Below are positions 1 to 62,400 of a stretch of 64,000 bases of DNA, in pieces. Origin of the DNA: Oculina patagonica (taxonomy: Eukaryota); the NCBI RefSeq assembly GCF_052425735.1, contig NC_135767.1, positions 6,138,001 to 6,202,000 on the forward strand, read 5' to 3'. Under the pieces are notes generated by a model, which saw nothing but the letters and a program-made list of their open reading frames with translations, did not search any database and was not told where the DNA came from. The translations under genes and the position numbers were made by a program. The number at the start of each line of letters is the position of its first letter. Within the stretch, counting starts at the first letter, position 1.

Positions 1-620
1 TGCTGAACAATGTTTACACAGTCATTGCAGCTTCAGGTTATATTTTATGTGGAGTATCTGTCTTAACATCGACCGCAATAAGTGTGGACAGACTTCTCGC
101 ACTGTTGCTGGGACTGAGATACAAGCAAGTGGTAACATTGAGGCGAGTTCGTGTAGTCATAACTTGTTTTTGTTTAATTGCTGCTATACTTGGAGGGCTC
201 CGAGGGTGGAGAAGAGATATTGCAATTAAGGCAGCCTCTGTTTTCAATTCACTTTGCGTGGCAACTTCCATTTTCTGTTACACGAAGATCCACCTCAAGC
301 TACGACATCAACAAGCCCAAGTACAAAACAATGTCCCCCACGGACAACAGAATGGAGAAGGAACGCCACTAAACATAGCAGGATACAAAAAGACAGTTTC
401 CAGCATTATGTGGGTGCAGTTGGCATTAGTTGCCTGCTATGTTCCGTGGGTGATTGTGGCTGTGCTGGATGCGAATGGTATTGAACATTACGTTGCTTGG
501 CTAGCTACACCAACTCTGCTTTTGTTAAACTCATCTCTAAACCCGATCTTGTACTGTTGGAAAATCAGGGAAGTGAAACAAGCAGTTAAAGGCACAATCA
601 GGCAGCTTTACTTTTTTTAA
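1..620 (+). CDS. Class A GPCR array copy 1 (5' end outside the window; TM3-TM7)
   Basis: Open frame with [16 protein letters not shown] (TM3/ICL2), CYVPW (TM6), [11 protein letters not shown] (TM7); paralogous to the other copies. Confidence 0.9.
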   Translation, partial: LNNVYTVIAASGYILCGVSVLTSTAISVDRLLALLLGLRYKQVVTLRRVRVVITCFCLIAAILGGLRGWRRDIAIKAASVFNSLCVATSIFCYTKIHLKLRHQQAQVQNNVPHGQQNGEGTPLNIAGYKKTVSSIMWVQLALVACYVPWVIVAVLDANGIEHYVAWLATPTLLLLNSSLNPILYCWKIREVKQAVKGTIRQLYFF

Positions 621-1174
621 AAGCCTAGCTGTGTAAACCAACATTAAGTTGAAAAGTGAAATCGACAGTGTCTAAATGGTGCGAAAGAGTAGCTTAATTT
701 ATTTCTTGCAATGTTCACAATTGCTTTCGAATCAAATTGGAAAAGATATGGATTGAGACAAGCTAGATTACGAATGATAAACTGCATAATTTATAAGACT
801 TTGGACGAAGATTCGCCTTCCATTACGCATCCATTTTGGAGCAAACGTAAAGCAGTTCCTTTGTTTGCTTTTGTTTTAACTTTAATTTAGCTATCATTCT
901 TAAGCACTGATAAGAAAACTTAAATTAATTTAGGCGCGAGGTTAGGTTTCACAACATACATTAACAGTTTATGTCGGTTCCTCTTTGGATGAGGGCAAAT
1001 CTATAATATTATTACCTATACCAGAGTTGAAACTTGCTGTTGCGAACAGTTAAGTCTACATAGGGGTCTATAATCAAGTAAATTTAATCACTTGTATGAA
1101 AAGATAACACAGAACGTTCGAGAAAAGAAATGTCATTAAAAATTGAACTGCAACCAGGATGAGACATGAAAAAA

Positions 1175-1276
1175 AAAAAATATGAGCTTTCGGCTATTTT
1201 ACTTTCTCTCCTTTTTTTTTTTTTTTTTTGCATTCGTCAAAGGCTATAGTAAAATAGCCGAAAGCTCATATTTTTT
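1175..1276. repeat. Inverted repeat, 29-bp arms around a T-rich spacer (MITE-like remnant)
   Basis: aaaaaatatgagctttcggctattttact (1175-1203) is the reverse complement of 1248-1276. Confidence 0.7.
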
Positions 1277-1417
1277 CTTAACTTTTTAAACCAGAGAACG
1301 CTATTTTACACTTTTAAAAGAAATGTCAGTTCATTCAGGTAAAATAAAATTGTGCAAAGTTCGTGTATTTGTCGAAGGCAGCGTCCACGAAGTAATCAGA
1401 CCCAAAACTCTATTTAA

Positions 1418-1784
1418 GGTGGCTGGTAACGGTTTCCAGCACTTTCCAGCTCTTATACTTTGACGGGTCAGTACTACAAATCCTTATCAGTTGATGCTAC
1501 AATAATGGTATGAAATTAATGCCCAGTGATTGGTGAATATGTTGTGATTATTTTCATGACGTCATTGGTTACTATAGCAACAGTATAACCTGTTAAAAAC
1601 ACCCTTAATTTTGGCTTTAAGTGCTTATAACTCAAAAACGAGCTCGGTCACCCCCATTTTTTATTATTGAACATTAATCAGCATGTTAAGATACAACTTT
1701 TTGCAAAGTTAAAAAAATTCTACGAAGCGGTTTCAGAGCCACCTTAAAAATTTGAAAATTTAAGGTGGCTCTGAAACCGCTTCG
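1418..1784. mobile_element. TTAA-bounded (Kolobok-like) non-autonomous element, probably truncated
   Basis: TTAA-ggtggct (1414-1424) ... agccacc-TTAA (1737-1747), plus a 26-bp-arm hairpin 1723-1748/1759-1784. At 1785 the sequence joins abruptly to a block paralogous to about 11948. Confidence 0.55.
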
Positions 1785-2438
1785 CCGAACAAATACAACT
1801 ATCAACTGCTCCTAAGACTTGAACACGAATCCATTCTTGTGTTAATTAACATTAACGAGTTTGACAATCATTCTGTATTGATACATTTAGTAAAAAACTA
1901 ACATAAGATCAGCTGCTGCATCCTGCTGTCCAAACAAAAAGAATATTTTACAACTGCGCATTTCCTGAGAGATAACACTTTGTTTAAAGTTGCATGCTAA
2001 GAGCGGAACTGAGTTCTCAAAAGTCAATACAACGATAGGAAATCTTATTTCAACATTAGTCGGAATAGCAAATATTTCACGGAAAACTACTTATACTTTG
2101 GCCAATTTTTTTTCTTCGTGTGACATTTAACTCAAAGGGTTTGCTCCTAAATACATGTAACTGTAGAACGTTTCATTCTTTTCATTTAAATCTTTAGTTA
2201 AAAAGATATGTGACTGATGCTGTTCTTTCGATCTTTAGTGTATCGTTATTGCTTGGAAAAATAATACAATCTCAGTTAGTTTTGTTTTTCAAATGATAAG
2301 CGGTGTAATGTCTAAGCAACTGACAGATCTATCAGTTTTAAACTCAAACGTTAAGCAAATGGTCAAATTGCCGGATTTAAAAGGACAATGCAATAAACAC
2401 AGGGCCTTTAATAGGAAAAAAACAAACAGACACAAAAC

Positions 2439-2537
2439 TAGCCTGCGAGAGCAGACGCATTTCCGGCCGTCGCTTCTCTCCGCTATTTTTCGGCGGAGAG
2501 AAGCGACGGCCGGAAATGCGTCTGCTCTCGCAGGCTA
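2439..2537. mobile_element. Palindromic 99-bp MITE with 9-bp TSD (Academ- or Mutator-like)
   Basis: Near-perfect hairpin tagcctgcgagagcagacgc...gcgtctgctctcgcaggcta, flanked by acacaaaac at 2430-2438 and 2538-2546. Confidence 0.85.
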
Positions 2538-2696
2538 ACACAAAACAAGAGAGGGCGTGTTAATTATCAGCCACATATAAAATCGTCATCCTAATAACAA
2601 AGCTGCAAGTTGATGCTTTTTCTTCTCAACGCTTCGTACCTTCCTCAACTTCAAGCACTCTTCAGGCAAGCTTAATTTTCTGACCACTCAGAAACA

Positions 2697-3035
2697 ATGA
2701 CGAACTTTACTGGAGAAGGAAACTACACAAGCAAACTAAATCAAGTACTAAACACACAGCCAGCAGGCATAGTTGAATTTTTGACAGCTTTGAACATTTT
2801 TCTTTCCATCACCGCTGCTGTGGGCAATGCTCTGATCCTTATGGCTCTCTGCTATGTTCCTTGGATGGGTGCGGCTGTACTAGATGCAGATGAAATTAAA
2901 CATTACGTGGCTTGGTTAGCTACGTCAACTCTAATCTTCTTAAACTCAACCCTTAACCCGATTTTGTACTGTTGGAAAATCAGGGAAGTGAAACAAGCAG
3001 TTAAAAGCACAATCAGGCAGCTTTACTGTTTTTAA
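2697..3035 (+). pseudogene. GPCR copy 2 with an in-frame internal deletion of about 191 codons (end of TM1 joined to TM6)
   Basis: ...GNALILMAL is fused directly to CYVPW...NPILYCW; 112 aa versus 303 aa in intact paralogs. Confidence 0.85.
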
Positions 3036-4003
3036 AAGACTAGCTGTGTAAATCGAAATAGAGTTGAAAAGTACTGAATTGACAGTGTCCAAATAATGTG
3101 AAAAAGTATCTAAATTCATTTCTTGCAATGTTCACAATTTTTCTTCAAATCAGATTGGAAAAGATTAAGATTAAGATTGCGCTAGATTTCGACCTTTCCT
3201 TTGTTTTCTTTTGTTTTAACTTCTTTAATTTAGCTATCGTACTAAGCCACTGATCAGAAAACTTGAATGTAGATTTTAGTTTAGATCTCAGTGTCACAAC
3301 AGACATAATGCTAGATTTCACAACAACAGTGACTTATTCGATTTCGTGACTTATTATTAATTAATGGCAGAAATAAATGATAATTTTCGAATTGGTGGAA
3401 AAAATGCGTTTCATAATCCAGCTGGCGTTAAAAATTAGTGATATTATTTCTGGGAGAAACACTTCTGTGAACTATTTGGCAGAAAAATGAGTTTTTTCCA
3501 CTACAGGTTTCTGAAATAATTATAATGAACTGTTAGCTGGTGAAGTTTGGCATAATTTATTTATAAATTGTCAAGTCTTGGAGTTGTATACAAATCTTGA
3601 TATACCACCAGTCGGTAGCATCTTAACGTCATCAGAACACCTGTACTTGTAAGCGAAAGTGTTTAGAGAAAATTTATTCTTGATTAATGTACACGCTATA
3701 TCAGACTGTGCAACAACAAAATTGTTTATTTTGTCAACGACAGCAAACTTTACCTTTAACTTTTCACAGAGATTTTGGAATATTCAGCAGAGCAAAACTG
3801 AACTATTTTTCCCTATTATTATAAAACATCGACCATGTTTAAATACACTTTGTCAGCACAAGTGGGCGTGTTATCAGCGACATATGAAATCATCATCTCA
3901 AATAACAAAGCAGCAAGCTAATGTTATTTTGTGAAAGCTTCGGAACTGTTTCAACTTCAAGCACTCTTCTACGCAAGCTTGATTCCCTGACCACCCAAGA
4001 ACA

Positions 4004-4915
4004 ATGGCGAACTTTACAGGAGAAGGAAACTACACAAGCAAACTGAACCAAGCACTCAGCGCACCACCAACAGGCATAGCTGAATTTTTTGTAGCTTTGA
4101 ACATTTTTCTTTCCATCACCGCTGCTGTGGGCAATGCTCTGATCCTTGTGGCTCTGAAGAATGTCTTCTCTATTCATCCTCCAACAAAACTTTTCTTTCG
4201 ATGTCTAGCGGTCACTGATCTTTGCGTTGGTCTTATTGTACAACCACTGTATGCTACCTACACTATGTCAAGTATAATAAAGATGAACGTGAATGTTTTG
4301 TTTTACGTTTTCAAAGTCTACGCAGTTTCAAGTTATATTTTATGTGGATTATCTGGCTTGGTGTCGACCGCAATTAGTGTGGACAGACTTCTCGCACTGT
4401 TGCTGGGACTGAGATACAGACATGTCGTAACACAAAGGCGAGTTCTTGTAGTCATAACTTGTTTTTGGCTAATTGCTGCTTCATGTGGATTGCTCTCGGT
4501 GTGGATAGAAGATATCGCCATTAACACAACCTCTGTTGTCGTAATACTTTGTCTGGTAACTTCCATTTTCTGTTACACGAGGATCCACCTCAAACTACGA
4601 CATCAACAAGCCCAAGTACAAAACAATGTCCCCCACGGACAACAGAACGGAGAAGCGATTCCACTAAACATAGCAAGATACAAAAAGACAGTTTCTAGCA
4701 TTATGTGGGTGCAATTGGCATTAGTTGCCTGCTATGTTCCGTGGGCCATTGTCGCTGTGCTAAATGCGAATGGAATTGAACATGATGTTTCTTGGTTAGC
4801 TGCAATAACTCTCGTTTTCTTAAACTCATCTCTAACCCCGATCTTGTACTGTTGGAAAATCAGGGAAGCGAAACAAGCAGTTAAAGACACAATAAGGCAG
4901 CTTTACTGTTTCTAG
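4004..4915 (+). CDS. Class A GPCR array copy 3 (303 aa, adenosine/melanocortin-receptor-like family)
   Basis: Seven hydrophobic segments; GN (TM1), LAVTD (TM2), DRL, CYVP; NPxxY changed to TPILY. Confidence 0.92.
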   Translation: MANFTGEGNYTSKLNQALSAPPTGIAEFFVALNIFLSITAAVGNALILVALKNVFSIHPPTKLFFRCLAVTDLCVGLIVQPLYATYTMSSIIKMNVNVLFYVFKVYAVSSYILCGLSGLVSTAISVDRLLALLLGLRYRHVVTQRRVLVVITCFWLIAASCGLLSVWIEDIAINTTSVVVILCLVTSIFCYTRIHLKLRHQQAQVQNNVPHGQQNGEAIPLNIARYKKTVSSIMWVQLALVACYVPWAIVAVLNANGIEHDVSWLAAITLVFLNSSLTPILYCWKIREAKQAVKDTIRQLYCF

Positions 4916-4981
4916 ACGACTAGCTGTGTAGATCGACATAAGGTTGCAAAGTACAATTGACAGTCTCGAAATAGAGTAATG

Positions 4982-5640
4982 TATAGATTTAGCCAAGCCT
5001 GAAGCGGAGCTCCACATATACTTTTTCGCCTGTTCTTAATAGTTTTTGAAAATACCATCGTTGAAAATACTGTCCATAGCTAAAATAATTCGTCAACTCC
5101 AATGCAATCGCAGAAATTCCGCTGCCAAAATCTTGTCATTAGCTTGTTGAAAACAGGAAAAAAAAACTTGAGCCAGCGATCCAATGGAAAATATAACCTG
5201 GTCAGCGGAAATCTTCATAAAACAGGTGACGTCGATGATCTCTTTACTGTTCAGCGGATACTTTGTTTTGACAGCTGTCAATTGACCATATTATATCACG
5301 GATGTCCAGTATCAAAGACTTATACTAGTTATACAACACTTTCGAGTGGTATACTATGGAATATCCCACGAGTCACTTGTATTTTCTCTCGGTATACACA
5401 CGAGCCCTTAGGCGAGTGTGTATACCAAGAAAATACAAGTGACAAGTGTGATATACCATAGTATACCACGAGAAAGTGTTGTATAACTATTTTATACCAT
5501 ACCATAGAAAATACGCTTACTAAATTTCGTCGAGAATACAATCGCAGCGCACGATGGGAAGGTTGGGTTGAATACCGTCGAATATACAACGGCTTTCCTG
5601 TATTCTGATTGGCTGTATTTTCTATGGCATGGTATAAAAA
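4982..5640. repeat. Composite interspersed repeat with two long hairpins
   Basis: Starts atagatttagccaagcct...ggagctcc, as does 34107. Contains imperfect long palindromes at about 5327-5489 and 5491-5639. Confidence 0.6.
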
Positions 5641-6096
5641 CCGATATGGCATTCTTCTTCCCCCGCCCGAGTTGCCTTGTGACTCCCCTCCTCCTCCTCG
5701 AGAGTCTGTAGGCGCGCGCTGGCGTATGCTCACTCGATAACCAAATTGTTTGGACTTGATGGGTTTACCAAATTTCCTTACCCATGGTGCTCCGCTGGCG
5801 ACTGCAAAACTGTAGACAAAGAAGCTCTTTCCATGGCGTATTATCCGTTTGGCACAAATAGTGAAACAGCACATTTATTCGACTTAATTAAGCTATCATG
5901 CTAAGCCATCGATTAGAACATTTTAATAAATGAAAACTGAAGGTTAGGTTTCACACCAGACATTTAACAGTTTGTGCGGATTCCTCTTCGGATAAATGCA
6001 AATTTAAAATATCATGACCTATACCATAGTTAAAACTTGTGCTAGCAGTTAGGTTTATAACTAAGCATGCTAAGTCCGTGCTATGTATTGTATATA

Positions 6097-6888
6097 CCTT
6101 ATTACATGAAATTTTCGCGACACGTTAATTTCGCGAATTTCGCGATTTTTTAAAAATCGCGAAATTAAAGTGACGCGAACAATAAGTGTCGCGAACATAA
6201 CATGACGCGAAAATTAAGTTATCTATCAACTTTATTGGTCTTAAAAAATTTTACAAATAAAAGAAAAAGAAAAGGACCAAAAAGGAATTGCGCGAACGGG
6301 AAAATAGTAACCCATGCGGGGCGCAACCTAAAAACTAAAAAGAATGGCGATAAAAATCTTAAATTAAAAAATATATATATATAATAAATATAATTAATTA
6401 CTATAGTTAAAAATTATACCGATACACTGAAGGAAAATTTCATGTAATAAGGTACCTGATTGAAAAAACGTTGACCCGATTGTCCGAAAGAATGAGTTAA
6501 GTACCACTGAAGGATACAATTTTCAATGTAAATGGATGTTGTGGTCAATTGACTCAAGAACTATAGTTTACGTACAAGCATGAACTGCTTGTGGACATTG
6601 TGAGAACTGCTCTGTTAACGACTGTTGACATTTAGTCCCGCCGTTGCGTTTTTGTTTATTTTGACGTTATCGTTCCTTTGATAACGATTAACGATAGTCG
6701 TTTTATCAATTCAACGACGTGTTTAATAATATCACAAAGGCAATTTAATTGTGTCTTCCTCAAAAAACGCGAAATTAAAGTGATTAAAAATGCAACAGTT
6801 TCGCAAAATCGCGAAATTTAAGTGTCGCGAAATATGCGCACCTCAAAATCGCGAAATTAACGTGTCGCGAAAATTTCATGTAATAAGG
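6097..6888. mobile_element. TA-flanked MITE (Tc1/mariner-type ends), 40-bp TIRs
   Basis: ccttattacatgaaattttcgcgacacgttaatttcgcga (6097-6136) is inverted at 6849-6888 with TA on both sides. Absent from the paralogous site at about 24200-24240. Confidence 0.85.
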
Positions 6889-7006
6889 TACCTGATTGAA
6901 AAAACGTTGACCCGTGAAAAATAAACCGAAGGGAATTCTGGGTAGACAGCATTGGTGAGCTTAGTAGTTATGTTCAATTTATTTATAATCAAGACATTTT
7001 TTCTTT

Positions 7007-7076
7007 CTTTCACCGAAAGGTCTCTGAAGAGTCTCTTGGCGGAGACGAAACATGCGTGTCAGACCAGCCACGAAAG
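7007..7076 (+). ncRNA. Type I hammerhead ribozyme (copy 1)
   Basis: Stem I GGTCT (7019-23)/AGACC (7061-65); core CTGAAGA (7024-30); stem II GTCTC/GAGAC with 6-nt loop; GAAA (7047-50); stem III ACA/TGT; GUC triplet ending at 7060; distal stem I CTTTC/GAAAG. Confidence 0.9.
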
Positions 7077-7187
7077 TATTTAACAATTTACACGTTACGC
7101 AATTGGGAATGCTTACGCGACGTAAGGCCAGATTGCACCATCATTTTGACGCTAGCGGGACTTCGAACGCGATGTTCGACGAGTTAG

Positions 7188-7256
7188 CTTTCACCGAAAG
7201 GTCTCTGAAGAGTCTCTTGGCGGAGACGAAACATGCGTGTCAGACCAGCCACGAAA
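7188..7256 (+). ncRNA. Type I hammerhead ribozyme (copy 2)
   Basis: Identical to copy 1, shifted by 181 nt; predicted cleavage after C7241. Confidence 0.9.
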
Positions 7257-9586
7257 ACATTTTTTCTTTGAGAGCTTTGAAAGCATGATTTATGCAATCT
7301 GTCTTATTATTATGTTCATTTTGTCACAGAAGACGATTACTTTTTCCGATTTCCCAGTAAACATTTGGGTCGCATCGTTTATCGTTTATGCCTTTCACGG
7401 GACAACGTTTCTTCAATCAGGTGTATGGTGGTACATAACATAATGTATGATAACAGAAAGTTGAGATAATTTAAGTGAAAGAAAAAAATGTACAATGTTT
7501 AATTGTCCATCTTTTGATGGCAATTAATTCATCAAACCCAAAACTTGTTTTTTAAAAAACAGTTTAAACTAGTTTTTTTTTAACCTTATGAAAAATCTTT
7601 TAGTAGTAGTAGAGAGGGGGTTGAATAATCGTATATAAAACGTTAACATAATGCTCGATTTTCATTAATTCTCCGTGCACCTATTTTTCTCATAATTGGC
7701 TCGCGGCGCGAGTGTCCAATCCACCTTACAGAAAAACATGGCGGCTGTAAATTTTACCACAGTACCTTGCGAACGCAACCCAGCCAAGTTAAGAATGACG
7801 TCATGTAACTAAAGACTAAGCCAAACTTAATGTAGTTAACGGTGTCGAATTTTATTCCCGCAGTTTCGCCTTTCTCTTGCCCCCATTAACTGCCCCTGGG
7901 TCTCCAAGGATGCACCAAGACTTGTTTTTATATAGTAAGAAAGAGAAGCAAAAGGTTACTCAGAAATAACGAGACAGCCTATCCACGAGTAATGAAAGTA
8001 TTAGACAAAAGGGAAAGTTAACAACCTAGTTAATGGGGATTTGCCAAAAAAGACAGTTCTTTTATTTTCACCAAGTTGTTTTTCTTCCTATACAGTTGTC
8101 CCCATCTGCAATGATTTCTCCGAACTGTCATTATGTAGGCTGGTGAAGTCTTCTACAGCTGCACTCCTTTTATATAAGAAAGTCTAATTTTTTGGCCTGG
8201 ACTAAACGTCCTTAACTTTTTCGAAGATTTGAGCCTGAAATGTTCTTAGAATGTTCTTATTTCTTAAAAATATTTCACAAAAGTAGTATTGCAGTAAATT
8301 CATTCCTAACAGATATGTACATGTTCACGTCACCAATGAGTGAAGACAATACTGGTTACAAGTCAAGATTTGAATATATATTTATTCATTAAGTTCATAC
8401 ATTTGTCTCTCGCAACAAAGAGGAAAAAATGAAATTCGTTCTTAACCAAATTTCAGCCTTCGAAACGTCTTTGGGATGTTTTTAAATTTTGGCCTTTCTT
8501 CAGCCTCGATGTTCTTGCAAAAAACGTTCTTATAAAAAAAATGCATTTTGTAAATTGTCGACTCTAAAACTGAGGATATGCAAATATTTGTTTGACTAAT
8601 GCAATATCAGGTGATCAATTATAATTGCCACTGGTAAATGGTTGAAATTGATAATGGCAGGAAACAATTTTCTCCGGATTTAAAATTTTAGTTAACGGAT
8701 CTATTTTTTTATAAACGCCGGGTTTCCAAGGTGAAGTTGTAAATAACCCCCTCAAGCATTTATTTGATGTATAAAAAGCTGTATTTGTAATGAAAATTAG
8801 TAAGTCTCTCAAAAATAATGTATAAAATCCGTTGTTTAATAAGCTCCGAGCTCGAACAAAGTACACGAGTCAAATAAACGCCAGGTAGACCAGGCCGAGT
8901 TTACGCGGGGGTAAAAAAAAGGTTTTATGTTAATTATTAGATTTAACTGCTACTCAAAGCGGTCAAAGTTTCTGCCCAAAAATAATTATAACGGCAGAAC
9001 TATTGGAAAAATAGCACAATCTCAAAATTTTTGTTTTATAAATAGTAAGCGATGTAATATCAAGCAACTGACAGGTATATTAGTTTTAAACTCAAATGTT
9101 CACGAAAATGGACGAATGACGTAGTTTAAAAGTCTAATGCAATTAAAACTGGGCCTTTTAGGATAAACAGGACGTCAAGTGAAAAAGACACTTACAAAGC
9201 ACAAGTGGGCGTGTAAACAGCGACATATAAACTCATCATCTCACTAACAAAGCTGCAAGCTGAAACTTTTGTCTCACTGGTTAATTTGCAACGTTTTATC
9301 AAGTAACTGACAGATCTATCAGTTCTAATATCAAACGTGCAAGAAAATAGTCAAATTGCTAGATTTACAAGTATAATGCAATAAACACCGGGCTTTTAAG
9401 GAGCATCAGGAAGTCCTGTCAAAAAAAATACACGCACAGCACAAGAGTTCGTGTTAACAGCGACATATAAAATCATCATTTCTAAAACAAAGCTGTAAGT
9501 TGATACTTTATTCCTCAAACGTTTGTACCTTCCTCTACTTTAAGCACTCTTCAAGGCGAGCTTAAATTTCTGACCACCCAAGAACA

Positions 9587-10495
9587 ATGGCGAACTTTAC
9601 TGGAGAAGGAAACTACACAAGCAAACTGAACCAAGCACTCAGCGCACCACCAGCAGGCATAACCGAATTTTTTTCAGCTTTGAACATTTTTCTTTCCATC
9701 ACCGCTGCTGTGGGCAATGCTCTGATCAATTTTGCTCTGAAGAATGTCTCTTCTATTCATCCTCCGACAAAACTTTTCTTTCGATGTCTGGCAGTCACTG
9801 ATCTTTGCGTTGGTCTTATTATACAACCACTCTATGCTGCCTATATTATGTCTCCTAAGATCAAGATGAACGTGAATGTGCTGTATTATGCTAGCCAAAT
9901 CTATGGAGCTTCAAGTTATATTTTGTGTGCAGTATCTGGCTTGACATCGACAGCAATTAGTGTGGACAGACTTCTCGCACTGTTGCTGAGACTGAGATAT
10001 AGGCATGTCGTAACATTGAGGCGAGTTCGTGTAGTCATAACTTGTGTTTGGCTAATTGCTGCTTCATGTGGTTTGTTCCGGGTGTGGAGAAGAGATATGG
10101 ACATTGCGGCAGCCTTTGTTGGCTTAATACTTTGTCTGGCAACTTCGATATTCTGTTACACGAAGATCCACCTCAAACTACGACATCAACAAGCCCAAGT
10201 ACAAAACAATGTCCCCCACGGACAACAGAACGGAGAAGGGAATCCACTAAACATAGCAAGATACAAAAAGACAGTTTCCAGCATTATGTGGGTGCAGTTG
10301 GCATTTGTTGCCTGCTATGTTCCGTGGGGCATTGTGACTGTGCTGCATGTGAATGGAATTGAACATGATGTTTATTGGTTGACAGAAACTTTGGTCTTGT
10401 TAAACTCATCTCTAAACCCAATCTTGTACTGTTGGAAAATCAGGGAGGTGAAACAAGCAATAAAAGGCACAATCAGGCAGCTTTACTGTTTTTAA
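9587..10495 (+). CDS. Class A GPCR array copy 4 (302 aa)
   Basis: Intact 7TM ORF with DRL, CYVPW, NPILY. Confidence 0.93.
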   Translation: MANFTGEGNYTSKLNQALSAPPAGITEFFSALNIFLSITAAVGNALINFALKNVSSIHPPTKLFFRCLAVTDLCVGLIIQPLYAAYIMSPKIKMNVNVLYYASQIYGASSYILCAVSGLTSTAISVDRLLALLLRLRYRHVVTLRRVRVVITCVWLIAASCGLFRVWRRDMDIAAAFVGLILCLATSIFCYTKIHLKLRHQQAQVQNNVPHGQQNGEGNPLNIARYKKTVSSIMWVQLAFVACYVPWGIVTVLHVNGIEHDVYWLTETLVLLNSSLNPILYCWKIREVKQAIKGTIRQLYCF

Positions 10496-10989
10496 AAGAA
10501 TAACTGTGTAGATCGACATAAGGTTGCAAAGTACATTTGACAGTGTCCAAATTTACCATCAAATTGTATTTGAAAAGATTGAGACAGCGCTAGTTTACGA
10601 ACGATAAACTACGAAACTGTAAACCAAGATGCGCCTTCCATTACGCATCCATTTGGGAGAAAGCGTAAAGCAGTCCCTTTGTTTGCTTTTGTTTTATTAT
10701 TTCGCTATCATGTTAAGCCACCGAAGAGGAAACTAACAAAAATGTAGACGCGAGTTAAGACATTAGGTTAGGTTTTACAACAGACATTTAACAGATTATG
10801 AAGGTTATGTTGATTCCTCTTTGGATGGCGGCAAATCTATAATATTATTACCTATACCAGAGTTGACACTTTTGCTAACAGATAAGTTAAGTCTACAATG
10901 AAGTAAGTGTGATTATTTATATAATAGGATAACACAGAATGTACGAGAACAGAAATTTCAGTTCATTCAGGAAAAACAAAATTCAATGA

Positions 10990-11207
10990 TACTTTCTTAC
11001 TTGCCCAGCATATTTAACGTAGTGACTTATATAATATTCATTATATTTTAAGTCCTGATGATTTTTACCGTGTTGAAATAAATATTATTATTTATTATAT
11101 CATGTCCTGAAGAGAACCCTGAAGAGGTTGAAAGTTCTAGACGATTTAAATGTAACTTTTTCACGCTCCAAACGGTTGAAAACAAATAAATCTAGAAGAA
11201 AAAAAAG
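10990..11207 (+). mobile_element. 218-bp retroposed insertion with 12-bp TSD and A-rich tail
   Basis: aaaattcaatga at 10978-10989 and 11208-11219; AATAAA and A-rich 3' end; absent from the paralogous block at about 17270. Confidence 0.75.
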
Positions 11208-12702
11208 AAAATTCAATGAAAAACTTTGTTTATCCGGACGGCGTAATTTTTTTTATTTGCTATTAAAATAGCATTTTTTTTAATGCTAAATAATATATAA
11301 AATAGAATGTGTTTCAACAAACATGGCAAGAGGATTAAGTTCGTTGACAAACAAAGTAGAATCAATATACTTCGTGGATAAATAATGGCTGCCCGCAAAC
11401 AAATATGTTTCGTGATTAAAATTGATAAACTAAAATGAAAGCAATAACTCGAGAAAAAAATTCTGAGGGATTAACCTTCACTGTACATCTTCTGTACAAA
11501 AACTGCCAGGAATTCTGCGACAGTGTATCGAAGGGTTTTAGACGGTACTATACGTCTAGCAGCTAAGATGGTTTTTTCAGCTTAAACGATTAAAACTGAC
11601 GGATCTTGGACAGATGAACGGTCGGTCGGCAAAGTTGATTAAAGGGGAAAGCTTGGCAGAGCACAGACTCGTTCCACGACACTGGTTACTCAATGCCAGA
11701 GGTACAGGGTCGTTGTCTCCTTTCACTCGGACAGTATAACAGCTAGGACTCACACAGATTAAACAATTTAATTGTCGTCCATCGACACTTACCTCTGAAG
11801 AGAAAATTGCTCAACATTTCGACATTTAATTTAATATAGGTTTCAGGATATTATACAAGATGTAGACAAACAATGATGTTACTTGGAAATGCATCTTGGA
11901 AATGCGCTGGCTTTGCAGTTTAAAGCAATCTGAATATGAATAAAATACCGAACAAATACAACTATCAACTGTTCCTAAGACTTGAACATGAATCCATTCT
12001 TATGTTAATTAACATTAACGAGTTTGACAATCATTCTGTATTGATACATTTAGTAAAAAACTAACATAAGATCAGCTGCTGCATCCTGCTGTCCGAACAA
12101 AAAGAGTATTTTACAACTGCGCATTTCCTGAGAGATAACGCTTTGCTTACAGTTACTTGCTAACGGTGGAACTGAGTTCTGAAAAGTCAATACAACGATA
12201 GGAAATCATAATTCAACATAGTCAGCATAGCAAATATTTCACTGCAGAAAACGACTTATGCTTTGGTGAGTTTTTTTGTGTGTGGCAATAAACTGAAAGG
12301 CTCTGCTCCTAAATAACAGAAGAACATGAAATGCGCCCAATCTTTTCATTTCAATCTTTTTTTAAAATGATAAAGCCGATGCTATTATTTCGGTCTTAAT
12401 TGTACCCTAACAACTTGGAAAAATAGCACAATCACAATTATTTTTGTTTTTTAACTGGTAAGCGATGTAAGTAACTGACATATCTATCAGATTTAAACTC
12501 AAACGTTCAAGAAAATAGTCAAATTGCGAGATTAAAAGCCTAATTCAATAAACACCAGGCCCTTCAAAATACAAGCGGACGTGTTATCGGGAACATATAA
12601 AATCTTCAGCCCACTTACAAAGCTGAAATCGTTTTTTCTGAAAACAGCTAACTTCTTTGACTTCAAGCAAACTTCAAAGCAACAGCTTATTACCAAAGAA
12701 CA

Positions 12703-13613
12703 ATGACGAACATAACTGGAGAAGAAAACTACACAAGCAAACTGAATCAAGCACTCAGCGCACCACCAGCAGGCATAGCTGAATTTTTTTCAGCTTTGAA
12801 CATTTTTCTTTCCATCACTTCAGCTGTGGGCAATGCTCTGATCCTTATGGCTCTGAAGAATGTCTCTTCTATTCATTCTCCGACAAAACTTTTCTTTCGA
12901 TGTCTGGCGGTCACTGATCTTTGCGTTGGTTTTATTGTACAACCACTCTATGCTACCTACATCATGTTTAGTATAATAAAGATAAACGTGAATGTGCTGA
13001 ACAATGTTTACACAGTCATTGCAGCTTCAGGTTATATTTTATGTGGAGTATCTGTCTTAACATCGACCGCAATAAGTGTGGACAGACTTCTCGCCCTGTT
13101 GCTGGGCTGAGATACAGACATGTCGTGACATTGAGGCGAGTTCGTGTAGTCATAACTTGTTTTTGGATAATTGCTGTTATATTTGGATGGCTCCGGGTGT
13201 GGAGAGAAGATATCGCCTACAAGGAAGCCTCTGTTATCTTACCTCTTTGCCTGGCAACCTCCATTTTTTGTTTTACGACGATCCATCTCAAACTACGGCA
13301 TCATCAAGTCCTAGTACAAAACAATGTCCCTCACGGACAACAGAACGGAGAAGGGATTCCACTAAACATACCAAGATACAAAAGGACAGTTTCCAGCATT
13401 ATGTGGGTGCAGTTGGCAGTAGTTGCCTGCTATGTTCCGTGGGGCATTGAGACTGTATTATATGCGAATGGAATTGAACATATTGTTGCTCGGTTAGCCA
13501 CAGATACACTCATCTACTTCAACTCAACTCTAAACCCAATCTTGTACCGTTGGAGAATCAGGGAAGTGAAACAAGCAGTTAAAGACACAATCAGGCAGCT
13601 TTACTGTTTTTAG
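12703..13613 (+). pseudogene. GPCR copy 5, 1-nt deletion frameshift in ICL2
   Basis: ctgggctgaga at about 13102-13112 versus ctgggactgaga in paralogs splits the 7TM into two ORFs (12703-13110, 13041-13613). Confidence 0.8.
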
Positions 13614-15871
13614 AACACTAGCAATGTAAATCGACGCAAAGTTGCAAAGAACAACCGACAGTCTCGAGATTGCGTAAATACGGCTAAGTTCATCTCTTAC
13701 AATGAGCAAAATTGCCTTCAAATCAGGTTGGAAAAGGTCGAAAAAGCGCTAGAATACCAACGACAAAATGTAAATATGTCGACAAAGATGAGGCATCCGT
13801 TAAGTGTCATTTGACTCAAACATTGAAGCAGCATCTTTGTTTTTACTTTAATTTAGCTATCATGCTAGGCCACCGATTAGTATGTATCAGCATAAACTCG
13901 AGGGTAGGTTTCACAACAGACATTTTCCATTTTATGATTCGTCTTCGGATCTACATTATCTATTATATATCTGCTAGAATTAAAATCTTAGCTAACAGTT
14001 AGGTTTATAGCTAAGTCCAAAACCAATGCGGGTTCTGCCCGGTTCTTTAATGATTCATAGTAACTGATCGAATCGCACGGCCTTGCGCTGGCGATGTTTC
14101 ATGATGCGAGATTTCATAATGAATAGTAACAGAAAATTCAGGTTATTCAAGATAAATAATAAAAAATGTACAATGTTTAATTGTGCATCTTTTGAAGGCA
14201 ATAAATTTATCCAACCCAAAACTTGTACTTTAAGATGAAGAACCGTTTAAAATATTTTTGTAGACCAGCATTTTCTAATCAAACGAACAATCTTTACTTC
14301 GACCGTATTGTGGAAAAAAGACAATTTGCACAAATGGTGTCTTCATTTGAATAACATGATTATATATCCTAAACCTCACATTCACGCAAAACATCTTTGT
14401 CTGTAAACATCCACATAAGCCTTCTCAACTTGCAAACTTTGTATCTTTGACTGACTCTAACGATACAGTAAAATGGCGATTATAGCCCTGAGCTTATACA
14501 ACTTCGTAAGGGGTTTTAGATGGGTTTATATCTGAGGGAGCTTAGATCCGGAGGGGTTTATAACCGGCATAAAAAACCCTTTGGAAATAAAATGGAACGC
14601 GTTTTTGAGACTATTGTGAGGGATATGTTGTAACAAAATAACTCTAATTAACTTGGCGGTTTGATCTGCAATTTTACGGTATAAAGGCTGGATGAAGCCC
14701 TCTGAAGGGGCGGGAAAGAGGCTTTCTTCAAATCATCAAACATTTTGTGCAAATAGAAAAACAGTGCGTTCTTAAATTAGAGAAAAAGTTAAACAAAACA
14801 CTACTTTTTGTTACTTAATCAATTCATACATGTATGAGACACATATTTGACTTTTCACAAATCGCAAGGATTTAATTAATAAGCGGGACGTGTTGCGTGA
14901 GGGATAAGAAAGACATAAGTTCATTTCAATTGTGTGAATGCTGACAAACTGTTTTCAGCTGTTATATCAAACGAAAGACTTTTTATAATAGACTTTGCCG
15001 CTAATAAGCCGGAACTTCAAACGCGCCCGTTCCTTTGCTAAACTCTTCTGTTAACACGATATGCGACTGTTTTTATTTTCAATTTATTTGTGCTAAAACA
15101 TGTAAAGAAACAACCTCAATTCCTTTTTAAACTCGTAAAGTAGGGTAATATTCCCAAGCAATAGACAACATATCTTTCACTTTCAACACAAACTTGACTT
15201 CATAAGTTCGAGAAAAACGACAAATGGCGAGATTTGGTGACATTGTGGCGCCTGATACAAAACTTTTCACATAAAAATGAGAGTTGGACTCGAATTTTCT
15301 TCGTCATGTAGTTAAAAATGTCAGGTGGCTTGTCTCGACTGTCTAAGTTTTATTAAAATCAAACTCATTTTCACATAAATGGTTCTGTTTTCACCGAAAT
15401 TCGTGTTTAATTAAAAAGAAAAGCGACCGATAACTCAGAAATACAGACTGAGTAACCTATTTGCTAGTATTTGATAAAAAAGCAAATTTAAGACCCTTAT
15501 GAATAAGCATAAAAACACTGTTCATCTTTCATTTTTATCCAGTTTTTTTTTACTTCCTGTGCAGGTGTCTCCATCTGGGGTAATTAATTTCTCTGCACGA
15601 TGAACTGATATTATATCAAGCAACTGACAGATCTATCAGTTTTCAACTCAAACGTTCACGAAAATGGTCAAATTGCGAGATTTAAAAGTATAATGCAATA
15701 AACACAGGGCCTTAAATAGGAAGTCCTGTAAAAGCACACAAAGCACAAGAGGGATTGTTATCAGCAACATATAAAATCGTCATCCCAATAACAAAGCTGC
15801 AAGTTGATGCTTTTTTCTCGAACTTCAAACACTCTTCAAGGCAAGCTCAATTTTCCCGCCACCCAAGAAAA

Positions 15872-16786
15872 ATGGCAAACTTTACTGGAGAAGGAAACTA
15901 CACAAGCAAACTGAACCAAGCACTCAGCGCACCACCAGCAGGCATAGCTGAATTTTTTTCAGCTTTGAACATTTTTCTTTCCATTACCGCTGCTGTGGGC
16001 AATGCTCTGATCCTTGTGGCTCTGAAGAATGTCTCTTCTATTTATCCTCCGACAAAACTTTTCTTTCGATGTCTGGCGGTCACTGATCTTTGCGTTGGTC
16101 TTATTGTGCAACCACTTTATGCGACCAGCATTTTGTCTGTTATAATAAAGATGAACGTGAATGTTCTGTACTACGTTCACAACGTTTGGGGAGCAACAAC
16201 TTTTATTTTATGTGGCGTATCTGGTTCGACGTCGTCAGCAATTAGTGTGGACAGACTGCTCGCACTGTTGCTGGGACTGAGATACAGACATGTCGTAACA
16301 TTGAGTCGAGTTCGTGTAGTCATTACTTGTTTCTGGCTAATTGCTGCTTCAGGTGGATTGCTCTGGGTGTGGAGAAAAAAGATCGCCAACATGGAAGCCT
16401 CTGTTTTATTAATACTTTGTCTGGTAACTTGCATTTTCTGTTACACGAGGATCCACCTCAAACTACGACATCAACAAGCCCAAGTACAAAACAATGTCCC
16501 CCACGGACAACAGAACGGAGAAGGGAATCCACTAAACGTAGCAAGATACAAAAAGACAGTTTCCAGCATTATGTGGGTGCAGTTGGCATTAGTTGCCTGC
16601 TATGTTCCGTGGGGTATTGTGGCTGTGCTAGATGCGAATGGAATTGAACATGAACTCGTGACTTTGTTTACTACAGAAACACTAGTCTTTCTAAACTCAT
16701 CTCTAAACCCAATCTTGTACTGTTGGAAAATCAGGGAAGTGAAACAAGCAATAAAAGGCACAATCAGGCAGCTTTACTGTTTTTAA
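15872..16786 (+). CDS. Class A GPCR array copy 6 (304 aa)
   Basis: ATG at 15872 ([10 protein letters not shown]) matches paralog starts; the track's upstream TTG start is not used by other copies. Intact 7TM. Confidence 0.93.
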   Translation: MANFTGEGNYTSKLNQALSAPPAGIAEFFSALNIFLSITAAVGNALILVALKNVSSIYPPTKLFFRCLAVTDLCVGLIVQPLYATSILSVIIKMNVNVLYYVHNVWGATTFILCGVSGSTSSAISVDRLLALLLGLRYRHVVTLSRVRVVITCFWLIAASGGLLWVWRKKIANMEASVLLILCLVTCIFCYTRIHLKLRHQQAQVQNNVPHGQQNGEGNPLNVARYKKTVSSIMWVQLALVACYVPWGIVAVLDANGIEHELVTLFTTETLVFLNSSLNPILYCWKIREVKQAIKGTIRQLYCF

Positions 16787-59413: not shown

Positions 59414-62400
59414 TATTTATATAGCGCCAATATCCTTAAAGTTCAAAAGCGCTTTACAGAAGTAACGTTAAAAATATTAAAACACTATTAAAAAATAAAA
59501 AATAAATATAAAAACAGTTAAAAGGTTACAAAAAATGCTTAAAATCTTAGACTAATAAAAAATGTTGCTAAAAAGTTATAAAAATGCTTTTTTAAAAAGG
59601 AGAGTTTTAAGTTAATGTTTAAAAAGGGACACTGAGGAGCTGTTCTTAATGTCAGAAGGTAGAGTATTCCAGAGTGTAGGAGCTGCCACAGAGAAAGATC
59701 TTGCGCCATATGTTTTCAAATTGAAATGCGGAATAGAAAGAAGGTCTTTTGAAGATGAGCGTAGCTGACGAGGTGGAGTGTAAGGAGTAAGGAGGTCGCG
59801 AACGTATGAAGGTGCCATATCATTTAGAGCCTTGTACGTGATGAGTAGACATTTTACTCTCACAGTGCCTCTCTCCACCCAAGTGTATAAATGGGTACTG
59901 GTAGCAAAATAATTCTGGGGGTAACCCTGTGCTGTATATCCAGGGGGAGTAGAAATACTCCTAGCCATTTAATGCTACAGAAACTGGGATAAGGTATAGG
60001 TATTAACAGATCATTTTTTTAAAAACTGCAAATAATAGACTGTCTCCATGTTTTTCATTTAATAGGTAATCCGAAGGCTGAGAGAAAGAGGAGAACCAAT
60101 CAGATTGTTTGGTGAAAGTGATGAGGAGGCTTGTCAAAGGCTAAGGTTAATGACAGATAATTATAGTTTATTTAGTACTGTTAACTTTCAAAAAATTAAT
60201 ACTTTCACCCTTCCACTTAAAAAATAAACTTTTACCACCTTCCCCCTCTCTGTCCCCCTGCCAAAAAAACTATTACTTTAAGAGAAATTTGATTTTCATT
60301 TGACAACTGTGGAGCTGTTAGACTTATCCCCACTGTAATATGTTTCTCCCTCTATTACGTTTAATTTTCAGTTGAAATGTTCATTAATACCCCCCATCCC
60401 CAGTCCCCCTCTGTTATCCCCCTCCTCCCAATATTGTTAACCGAGATAAATTTCTGACCAGAAAGAATTAGTTTGTGGTAGTTAACCCTATGATATGACC
60501 ATGTCCCCTCCCCCTCCTCCCACTGTAAGAACACATAAGTCTTGCCCTCCCAGGATCTTAATAACAGTCCCAGTGGGCTGGGGGCACACAGGATTTCAAG
60601 TGACAGAGATGATCGAATGATTTTTGGGGGTTTGAAATTTTCGATTCTGGGATTTTTTGGGGTAGGAAAATTTGGCAAGTATTATTTGATTTTATTAGTA
60701 TGGATTTTTTAGGGGTTTTTAAAACAATCTAAAGATTTATGGTAGTGCCTTGGCTGCCTAGTTCTGTGATTGAAGTACAAACGAAAGTGTTTTCCTGTTG
60801 ATTTTTTGAGTTAATTTTGGTCTAGGGATTTTTTTGGCAGTGCTAGGGATTCTTTTGGGTCTTAATTTTTGCCCCCATTCGATCTTCCCTGTCACTTGAA
60901 ACCCAGAGTACCCCCCCCCCCCCTGGTATAACAGTACATTATTTAAGCCCTGAAAATATAAAATGTCATTCTAATTTACAGGAGAATTGAGATGCTTGTT
61001 CCAGAGATTAACAAGGTATATAATTCAAATTCAAGTTCTGTACATGTATTACACACACACACATACACAAAACATGTACCGGTATGTCCTATGTTATATG
61101 TATGTTGTGTGGTTGCGTATGTTTGAATTTGGTTTTTTGTTTGTTTGTTTTTTAATTCGGTTAGTTCTACTTCAACTGGTAAGTTGGAAGAACTCTTGTG
61201 ATGCGACTATAAAAGCAAACTTGATTGTCCTACTGAATGCCGAATTCTGTCAATGATTAGAGAAGAAATTTAGCGTTTCCAAGAGAGAGTGTTTTCTTGA
61301 TGTCAACATGATAAAGTTAAGTTACACAGGCAAGGAGGCCATTGGCAGAAATCACAGAATGTTTCTGTTGATGTTGTCAGAGCAAATTTTCACTTCACTA
61401 CTTAAAATGCTTCTGTGAGAAAAATGCTATCCTGTGTATTTTCTCGCAGAGAAAGCTCCCACACCTGACCCACCATCCTGTGCATAGCCTTCCTTCTCTT
61501 CTTACCATACCGTTAATAAAAGACCCCATCCCAATTTACCATTCCCTTGCAAACTCTGCCTGTGTACTGCTATCCCCTTTTAAATTAAACATCTCTAACT
61601 CTTAGCATGAAAAACTATGTGATGTAACATTTTGTGTACCAGGGTCTAAGGAATGACTTCAAAGCAGCCATGGAAAAGATTGATCAGGAATATTTAGCAG
61701 AGTTAATCAAGCAACAGGTATGTCCTCAGTAAACGCACAGTCTTAATTAAAGACAAGAAGAAATTTTTTTAGTACTGGATGACTCAATAATCTCAGTCTT
61801 TAATAATATATGAAAATATCAAAACACAGTAGAACTGCCGACATCCTCCTGTCCTACAGTCACCCATGTTGCCTTGACCTTTTTTGCTGACAAAAAAACA
61901 ACAACATACATGTATCAAGGTGTCATAGCTCAGTTGGTATGGCAACACACTGGTAGTGCGGAGGTCATTGGTTCAAACCCGTTGTAGCCACACACTGCAA
62001 GGATCACATCATTCATTTCAAAAAAGCTCAGCCAGCCATTTTTTTATAAACTTAAGCACTGGGCACTGTTAATTATATTTATATATAGTCTGATACTTTA
62101 TAGACCTTATACTTTCTGAAGACACACTGTACAATCATGTAATCCAGGATTCAATGAATAGCTTGCATAATTCTCACGATCAGTGTGTAATTACAGTGGA
62201 GTGCTGATTTTTCTGTATCTCCTGATAACTCAAATGAAGAGTCCCTCGCCTTTCCTCAGTTGAACACTGCAATTTTTACGGTCCCCAATTTTTTTAATTT
62301 CCTGACATCTCAAACCAATTTTTGTTTCCCTTGAAGGTTGTAGAAATCATGATTCCAATGTACCGTATCTATTGGGCTATAAGCCAGGACTCTAGCAAAA

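Follow-up and report, generated by a model that had tools for sequence, protein, structure and literature searches.

In animals, retrozymes have recently been recognised to give rise to abundant small circular RNAs. Those of metazoans, which lack long terminal repeats (LTRs), have been defined as dispersed, multi-copy, non-coding tandem repeats of hammerhead ribozymes (HHRs) with target-site duplications (TSDs), their repeats measuring about 150-450 bp and forming anything from dimers to long arrays, with a G+C content below 50% and, when present, TSDs of more than 4 bp (PMC7229834). The published families accumulate mostly as circles (PMC7229834), and the class, its circular RNAs, their ligation by RtcB and a proposed link to Penelope-like elements are already in the literature (PMC7229834, PMC7761336, preprint 10.64898/2026.07.22.740005). 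That Penelope-like elements mobilise retrozymes was proposed by the authors of the class (PMC7229834, PMC7761336); according to a 2020 review, metazoan repeats lack any motif by which the machinery that mobilises them could be recognised (PMC7761336), and vertebrate retrozymes are related to pseudo-LTRs (2026 preprint 10.64898/2026.07.22.740005). Penelope-like elements have HHRs near their 3′ ends, are 5′-truncated, form partial tandems and prefer (TA)n targets (PMC8557442). Here, we analyse a 64-kb stretch of the genome of the stony coral Oculina patagonica (contig NC_135767.1, positions 6,138,001 to 6,202,000; hereafter the window, numbered from its first nucleotide), in which a 250-bp insert at positions 7007-7256 carries two hammerheads spaced by 181 nt. 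We consider it highly likely that a non-autonomous non-LTR retrozyme family with a non-coding 181-nt unit, copied by the cycle proposed in the Discussion, has inserted here recently.

A retrozyme from another stony coral, Acropora millepora (Amil224; Cervera & de la Peña 2020, PMC7229834), offers the closest comparison. The two share head-to-tail repeats with a canonical type I HHR, a G+C content below 50%, the lack of coding capacity, the occurrence as dimers to long arrays together with dispersed copies, and TSDs of more than 4 bp. However, the A. millepora unit measures 225-245 nt as against 181-184 nt in the present family, the HHRs differ in all three helices and both loops, and the remainder of the unit is also different, judged by inspection of both sequences. 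Self-cleavage and circular RNA have been demonstrated for the A. millepora family (PMC7229834), whereas the present one is known from genomic sequence. The published type also occurs in this genome (56 HHR matches, period ~244), and in our comparison the copy number of the 181-nt family is lower. By its sequence, the 181-nt family is a second coral retrozyme, distinct from the published one. Its HHR sequence gave no match in the searchable literature, and the family appears to be undescribed, the retrozyme class itself being known, also from corals.

Tandem or short interspersed nuclear element (SINE)-like type I HHR repeats whose transcripts are cut to unit length are also known from Schistosoma, in the form of the Sm-alpha hammerhead repeats. 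The same organisation and processing are found in the satellite 2 retrozymes of newt and axolotl (PMC7229834); both examples belong to other phyla and have other sequences, and in the amphibian ribozymes, which act as dimers, stem III is weaker. LTR retrozymes of plants (PMC4918200) share with the coral insert a non-autonomous, non-coding, hammerhead-flanked unit and are themselves expressed as circular RNA, but they contain type III HHRs in LTRs of ~350 bp, a primer-binding site (PBS) and a polypurine tract (PPT), 4-bp TSDs and Gypsy-type mobilisation, none of which we see in the present insert. Finally, the HHRs of Penelope-like pseudo-LTRs and 3′ ends (Cervera & de la Peña 2014, PMC4209133; Craig et al. 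2021, PMC8557442) are likewise of type I and stand at the 3′ end of a mobile unit that is heavily 5′-truncated, forms partial head-to-tail tandems and enters A/T-rich or (TA)n targets. In contrast to these elements, the insert has no open reading frame (ORF) for a reverse transcriptase (RT) or GIY-YIG endonuclease and a unit of only 181 nt, and its HHR is of the canonical form, in which stem III is real and stem I has an internal loop, rather than of the minimal form typical of Penelope-like elements.

Results

The window insert carries two complete hammerheads

The insert consists of 1.38 head-to-tail units of the 181-nt repeat, running through unit positions 128-181, then 1-181, then 1-15. 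A direct repeat (7007-7081 and 7188-7262) is spaced by 181 nt, its first 69 nt being identical (7007-7075 and 7188-7256), and a perfect 13-bp TSD bounds the whole. This direct-repeat analysis confirmed the structure given in an initial annotation of the window, namely a 250-bp insert with a perfect 13-bp TSD and identical 69-bp ends.

Read base by base, each 69-nt repeat contains all conserved core positions of a type I hammerhead. In the first HHR, helix I pairs GGUCU (7019-7023) with AGACC (7061-7065) and continues across an internal loop into a distal part formed by CUUUC (7007-7011) and GAAAG (7072-7076); the core comprises CUGAAGA (7024-7030) and GAAA (7047-7050), helix II pairs GUCUC with GAGAC (7031-7035/7042-7046) below the loop UUGGCG, and helix III has 3 bp under a UNCG-type cap, UGCG. 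The GUC triplet places C17 at 7060 in the first HHR and, 181 nt downstream, at 7241 in the second. Cuts at both predicted sites would free 181 nt (7061-7241). A pattern made of the core and the 3′ strand of helix I matched only these two sites in the 64-kb window and none in 100 shuffles, and the earlier description of a complete hammerhead at each end, with these predicted cleavage positions and this spacing, held at every base and in a unique pattern match. The unit has no open stretch longer than 78 amino acids, even when read round the circle, and is non-coding; two hairpins that the initial annotation had pointed out in it recur in the predicted folds (Table 1).

Table 1. Features of the retrozyme locus (window coordinates)
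Feature	Position	Strand	Basis or remark
TSD, left copy	6994-7006	+	acattttttcttt; present once only in paralogous copies of the host repeat
Retrozyme insertion, 1.38 units	7007-7256	+	absent from 7 paralogous copies of the host repeat
5′ type I hammerhead, complete; predicted cleavage C7060/A7061	7007-7076	+	core, helices, Rfam match, pattern match
181-nt unit between predicted cleavage sites	7061-7241	+	48.6% G+C; no ORF >78 amino acids
Hairpin cttacg/cgtaag, 6 bp, 3-nt loop	7112-7126	+	in linear and circular minimum-energy folds
Hairpin tcgaac/gttcga, 6 bp, 5-nt loop	7163-7179	+	in linear and circular minimum-energy folds
3′ hammerhead, identical to the first; predicted cleavage C7241/A7242; element ends 15 nt further	7188-7256	+	repeat, Rfam match, pattern match
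TSD, right copy	7257-7269	+	direct repeat; single in paralogues
Host MITE-like repeat, split by the retrozyme	6889-7425	.	inverted repeat, genome copies, 7 aligned paralogues

The insertion is documented by empty sites and is probably young

The host of the insert resembles a miniature inverted-repeat transposable element (MITE) of ~290 bp, with terminal inverted repeats of ~30 bp (6890-6919 and 7393-7422; TACCTGATTGAAGAAACGTTGACCCGTGAAAAG) and TA-like flanks. A first look at the genome gave 353 candidate copies, with paralogues 78-96% identical. In an alignment with seven of these paralogues, the window MITE differs by exactly the 250-bp insert and one extra copy of the 13-bp target, while the paralogues read ...AAGGCATTTTTTTCTTTGAGAG... 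once. Since these seven paralogous sites are empty and hold a single TSD copy, the insertion is proven. Its youth, which the initial annotation had deduced, is supported by 98-99% identity to family copies at six other loci, by the identical terminal repeats and by the intact TSD. An empty orthologous site or an insertion polymorphism was not found in three DNA runs, where the unitigs are ~100 nt long and the MITE flanks high-copy; contig joints in these runs that skip 6997-7260 are indistinguishable from paralogous MITE copies. One of the runs (X1) matches the unique flanks without mismatch and is probably from the same species or sample.

The unit belongs to a dispersed family with subfamilies of different age

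We searched the genome of this coral (529 Mb) for further copies of the unit and for TSDs, as the initial annotation had suggested, and obtained at least 119 unit matches, with TSDs of 9-13 bp in A/T-rich targets in at least eight further copies. The hammerhead pattern, with up to two mismatches, matched 114 times, its reversed control not at all; the matches fall into ~60 loci. Short dispersed copies of 0.25 to 6 units make up most of these loci, and the unit period is 181-184 bp across the family. Three long arrays of ~14-20 units (C5:16172304-16176018, C3:27081626-27085154 and C2:14284702-14287277) belong to a 184-nt subfamily and are 82-94% identical to the window unit; many of their HHR cores are inactivated, mostly by CpG-type changes (for example, GACAAAAC and CUAAUGA), as neutral decay after insertion would give. 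The majority of family copies have a CUGAUGA core and a 184-nt unit. The window copy and its relatives at the six other loci form a minor subfamily with a 181-nt unit and a CUGAAGA core, a change at the one free core position; this variant accounts for roughly 6-17% of the summed depth of the family in contigs of three coral labels, and the subfamily is younger than the main 184-nt one.

Taken together, the family combines a type I HHR, head-to-tail repeats in copies of 1.1 to 6 units and in the long arrays, absence of coding capacity, a G+C content below 50%, TSDs of more than 4 bp, and the absence of LTR, PBS and PPT, the unit being too short for LTRs. A dispersed, multi-copy, non-coding family of tandem HHRs with TSDs is what the definition of metazoan non-LTR retrozymes describes (PMC7229834), and the membership assigned by the initial annotation stands.

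Copy ends follow a junction rule

We mapped both ends of 36 independent fetched copies and extended this to the whole genome by a census based on patterns that show the flanks. The 3′ ends proved to be nearly fixed: 34 of the 36 lie at unit positions 14-29 (binomial P about 8e-34 for this 16-position window), and in the census the element stops between +15 and +26 relative to the cleavage site in ~32 of ~32 termini, with +18 to +20 as the commonest break points. Immediately before this common boundary lies the distal part of helix I of a complete hammerhead; the window copy ends at +15. The 5′ ends are scattered, as in 5′-truncating retroelements, with an excess at the scissile bond; nine of the 36 fetched copies start at unit positions 1-3 (P about 6e-9), and the census gave 11 independent junctions at which flanking DNA directly abuts A1 of AGACC, as well as one copy with a point mutation. 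The simplest reading of these starts would be that reverse transcription ran off RNAs with a ribozyme-made 5′ end. A start precisely at the scissile bond is shared by at least 12 independent copies, which gives the predicted cleavage site, and with it cutting in vivo, indirect support. The TSD targets often share a few homologous bases with the A/T-rich stretch GUAUUUAA downstream of the hammerhead.

Two further clusters of 5′ ends, at unit positions 171-174 (three copies) and 128-139 (five copies, including that in the window), were not significant by our estimate. At C9:22094244-22094334 (minus strand), unit positions 1-32 are tripled with a 32-nt period at the 5′ end of a copy, directly after flanking DNA; the locus has a duplicate 35 kb away (C9:22129794). 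It is tempting to speculate that this micro-array may have arisen by repeated run-off, each time followed by a new start at the usual site.

The published-type ~244-nt family behaves likewise. Some 30 of its 3′ termini in the census break at +8/+9 (UGCAGUUA, ending at the break), and the DNA that follows is TA-rich or (TA)n. Two copies have their 5′ end at the cleavage site of this family. The same junction rule is found in two unrelated coral families and is tighter in the published type. One two-unit ~244-nt copy (L031:1045-2489) is followed by a short TA repeat and then by an open frame with a GIY-YIG domain (amino acids 220-277), probably a 5′-truncated Penelope-like copy in the same microsatellite target. 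Just upstream of a ~244-nt array lie two transfer RNA (tRNA) genes of equal score (61.6 bits), 684 bp apart (L033:559-630 and 1243-1314).

Candidate partners, promoters and genomic surroundings

At least 150 GIY-YIG matches in the genome exceed the Pfam cut-off, with open frames of up to 1371 amino acids at at least ten loci, often in inverted pairs. At these loci (for example, C3:1323294, C5:25727195 and C8:9959455), an identical GIY-YIG score is found within an uninterrupted frame of 1371 amino acids, suggestive of a very young family of elements with GIY-YIG; many of the remaining matches stand in inverted pairs 1-3 kb apart. The ORFs in the fetched loci of the 181-nt family encode Ty3-type RT/integrase, BTB-Kelch or other host genes, or have no Pfam match, and none combines an RT with GIY-YIG; in the window, the ORFs neighbouring the insert are genes for G protein-coupled receptors (GPCRs). 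ARAGORN reported no tRNA-like gene in window 6500-7800, and inspection of the unit by eye for RNA polymerase III (Pol III) boxes yielded a partial B-box-like GTTCGA, with no A box at a suitable distance. We rejected a tRNA-derived SINE or Pol III promoter on this ARAGORN null and the lack of a convincing box match.

The retrozyme locus is intergenic and lies between tandem rhodopsin-type GPCR genes. Window 84-16786 (plus strand) holds, in tandem, at least five intronless ORFs or fragments of rhodopsin-family (7tm_1) GPCRs, two of which flank the retrozyme. Short repeats of ~40 bp (CAAAATCGCGAAATT...GTGTCGCGAAA) occupy window 6762-6872 and 6073-6254; they are very high-copy, since together with the neighbouring stretch they reach a summed contig depth of 1.6e5 to 4e5 in three coral DNA runs. 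Elsewhere in the window, 61919-61990 (plus strand) matches a tRNA slightly under threshold (28 versus 29 bits), and a hairpin at 1717-1794, probably a palindromic repeat, matches a plant microRNA-precursor model on both strands below threshold.

Discussion

These observations can be combined into a putative copying cycle. A locus with at least two units would be transcribed, and each hammerhead would cut after its GUC to release a 181-nt RNA, as suggested by the complete motif and by the genomic copies that start at that bond. By analogy with published families, this RNA may then be circularised by a host ligase of the RtcB type. An RT with an endonuclease, most likely supplied by a Penelope-like element, would nick an A/T-rich target and start the complementary DNA a few nucleotides 3′ of hammerhead helix I (+15 to +26), copying towards the 5′ end. 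The RT would then stop early, giving a 5′ truncation, run off at a cleaved site, or pass uncut or religated sites, giving multi-unit copies; staggered target cuts would leave the duplications of 9-13 bp. For the window copy, the RT would have passed two cleavage sites before it stopped at unit position 128. Target-primed reverse transcription starting next to the HHR fits these data. The HHR near the 3′ end, the strong 5′ truncation, the partial tandems and the A/T-rich targets match the habits of Penelope-like elements (PMC8557442), and the case for mobilisation by a Penelope-like RT is circumstantial.

Several results weigh against this interpretation. Both window HHRs were aligned over their full length by Rfam Hammerhead_1 (RF00163) in a permissive search of the kind proposed in the initial annotation (first match 7020-7064), but at 20.7 bits they stay below the gathering score of 34; at gathering thresholds Rfam found nothing in the whole window, and a permissive ribozyme scan of all 64 kb gave nothing beyond the two hammerheads. 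The low score is not evidence against them, since copies in this genome of the coral HHR type that was shown to self-cleave efficiently (PMC7229834) reach no more than 20-25 bits with the Rfam hammerhead models and are likewise under the threshold. By energy minimisation, the active HHR fold (-12.1 kcal/mol) is not the minimum-energy structure and competes with an alternative pairing at -18.8 kcal/mol; the 181-nt circle is no more stable than shuffled sequence (z = +0.28) and, for that reason, lends no thermodynamic support to a viroid-like rod. One small-RNA run of a related coral, of a library type unsuited to 5′-OH or circular RNA, held only two partial reads of the unit, and among the runs that the index lists as holding it none is recorded as RNA. 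Hammerhead products have 5′-OH and cyclic-phosphate ends and escape standard small-RNA libraries. Because of this, the RNA null is weak negative evidence and not absence. As regards the mobilising partner, no family copy lies within 5 kb of any scored GIY-YIG match, 150 of 860 candidates having been scored, a sample in which a rare master element could have been missed; a genome pattern search for a Penelope-like element with a near-identical HHR gave only retrozyme fragments; and no internal promoter was found, either by ARAGORN or among Pol III boxes sought by eye. Finally, a 5′ end exactly at the cleavage site means that at least some of the templates were open at this bond, and circles are accordingly not required.

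This last point bears on the form of the template. The initial annotation had taken the 1.4-mer layout as the product of a circular template. More than one round of reverse transcription on a 181-nt circle would indeed most simply account for the window copy and for the copies of 2-6 units, but the layout alone does not require a circle, as a partly cleaved linear oligomer, for the window copy possibly a trimer, or partial tandems of the Penelope type would produce it equally well. The same element might instead be copied from a linear, partly self-cleaved oligomeric transcript, with circles, if made, as by-products, an alternative that we regard as possible but not favoured. The at least 12 copies starting at the cleavage site imply templates with a free HHR-made 5′ end and an uncut site further on, and the 32-nt micro-array suggests template switching from such an end to the usual start. 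Yet the multi-unit copies, among them the window copy with its two crossed sites, would need several HHRs to stay uncut on linear RNA, whereas a circle turned into an RNA-DNA hybrid after the first round would explain uncut sites naturally; moreover, published families are mostly circles (PMC7229834), and a circle that opens in the middle of copying gives the same 5′ ends. Opening of the circle during copying and a partly processed oligomer would yield the same products.

Two other explanations dispense with an RNA-borne retrozyme or make it part of something larger. The first holds that the repeat is ordinary 181-bp satellite DNA, spread at the DNA level by unequal exchange or by excision and reintegration of extrachromosomal circles, with an incidental or relict hammerhead. 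The three long arrays of 14-20 units, the inactivating, mostly CpG-type substitutions in their HHR cores and the failure to detect RNA in the runs examined would all suit such a satellite; it does not predict a single 3′ boundary by the ribozyme, scattered 5′ truncations, an excess of 5′ ends at the scissile bond or TSDs of 9-13 bp at dispersed sites, nor that an unrelated second hammerhead repeat follows the same rule, and we consider it very improbable. The insert could also derive from an autonomous Penelope-like element with this HHR at its 3′ end, of which it would be a severely 5′-truncated remnant (solo pseudo-LTR or tail). Heavy 5′ truncation, partial tandems and HHRs near the 3′ end are typical of such elements (PMC8557442), vertebrate retrozymes are close relatives of pseudo-LTRs (preprint 10.64898/2026.07.22.740005), and the genome is rich in GIY-YIG ORFs. 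In the 36 fetched loci, however, homology never runs 5′ into non-repeat sequence, longer copies being merely more 181-nt units, and the ORFs near the copies are of Ty3 type or host genes and not RTs with GIY-YIG; together with the distance of the scored GIY-YIG sites, 150 of 860 candidates, from every copy, this makes a Penelope fragment an unlikely source.

Returning to the retrozyme interpretation, we tentatively put forward, as a conjecture with less going for it than against it, that the HHR, beyond its part in making circles, is the working end-module of the mobile unit, its 3′ edge marking the start of reverse transcription by an RT that probably comes from a Penelope-like element, and its cleavage setting the 5′ run-off point of many insertions. 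Such a role is suggested by the junctions of both coral families (+15 to +26 in one, +8/+9 in the other). If true, genomic junctions alone would report ribozyme activity in vivo, and the role of hammerheads in Penelope-like elements and retrozymes, a long-standing question, would become testable.

With the family described here, a second coral retrozyme joins the class, compact (181 nt) and represented by very young copies. The small size of the unit would suit the engineered expression of circular RNA. The junction rule, with a fixed 3′ end directly after the ribozyme, a 5′ end that often coincides with the scissile bond, TSDs of 9-13 bp and A/T-rich targets, speaks for target-primed reverse transcription of Penelope type; it is a modest addition to what is known of the class and offers a sequence-only readout of ribozyme activity.

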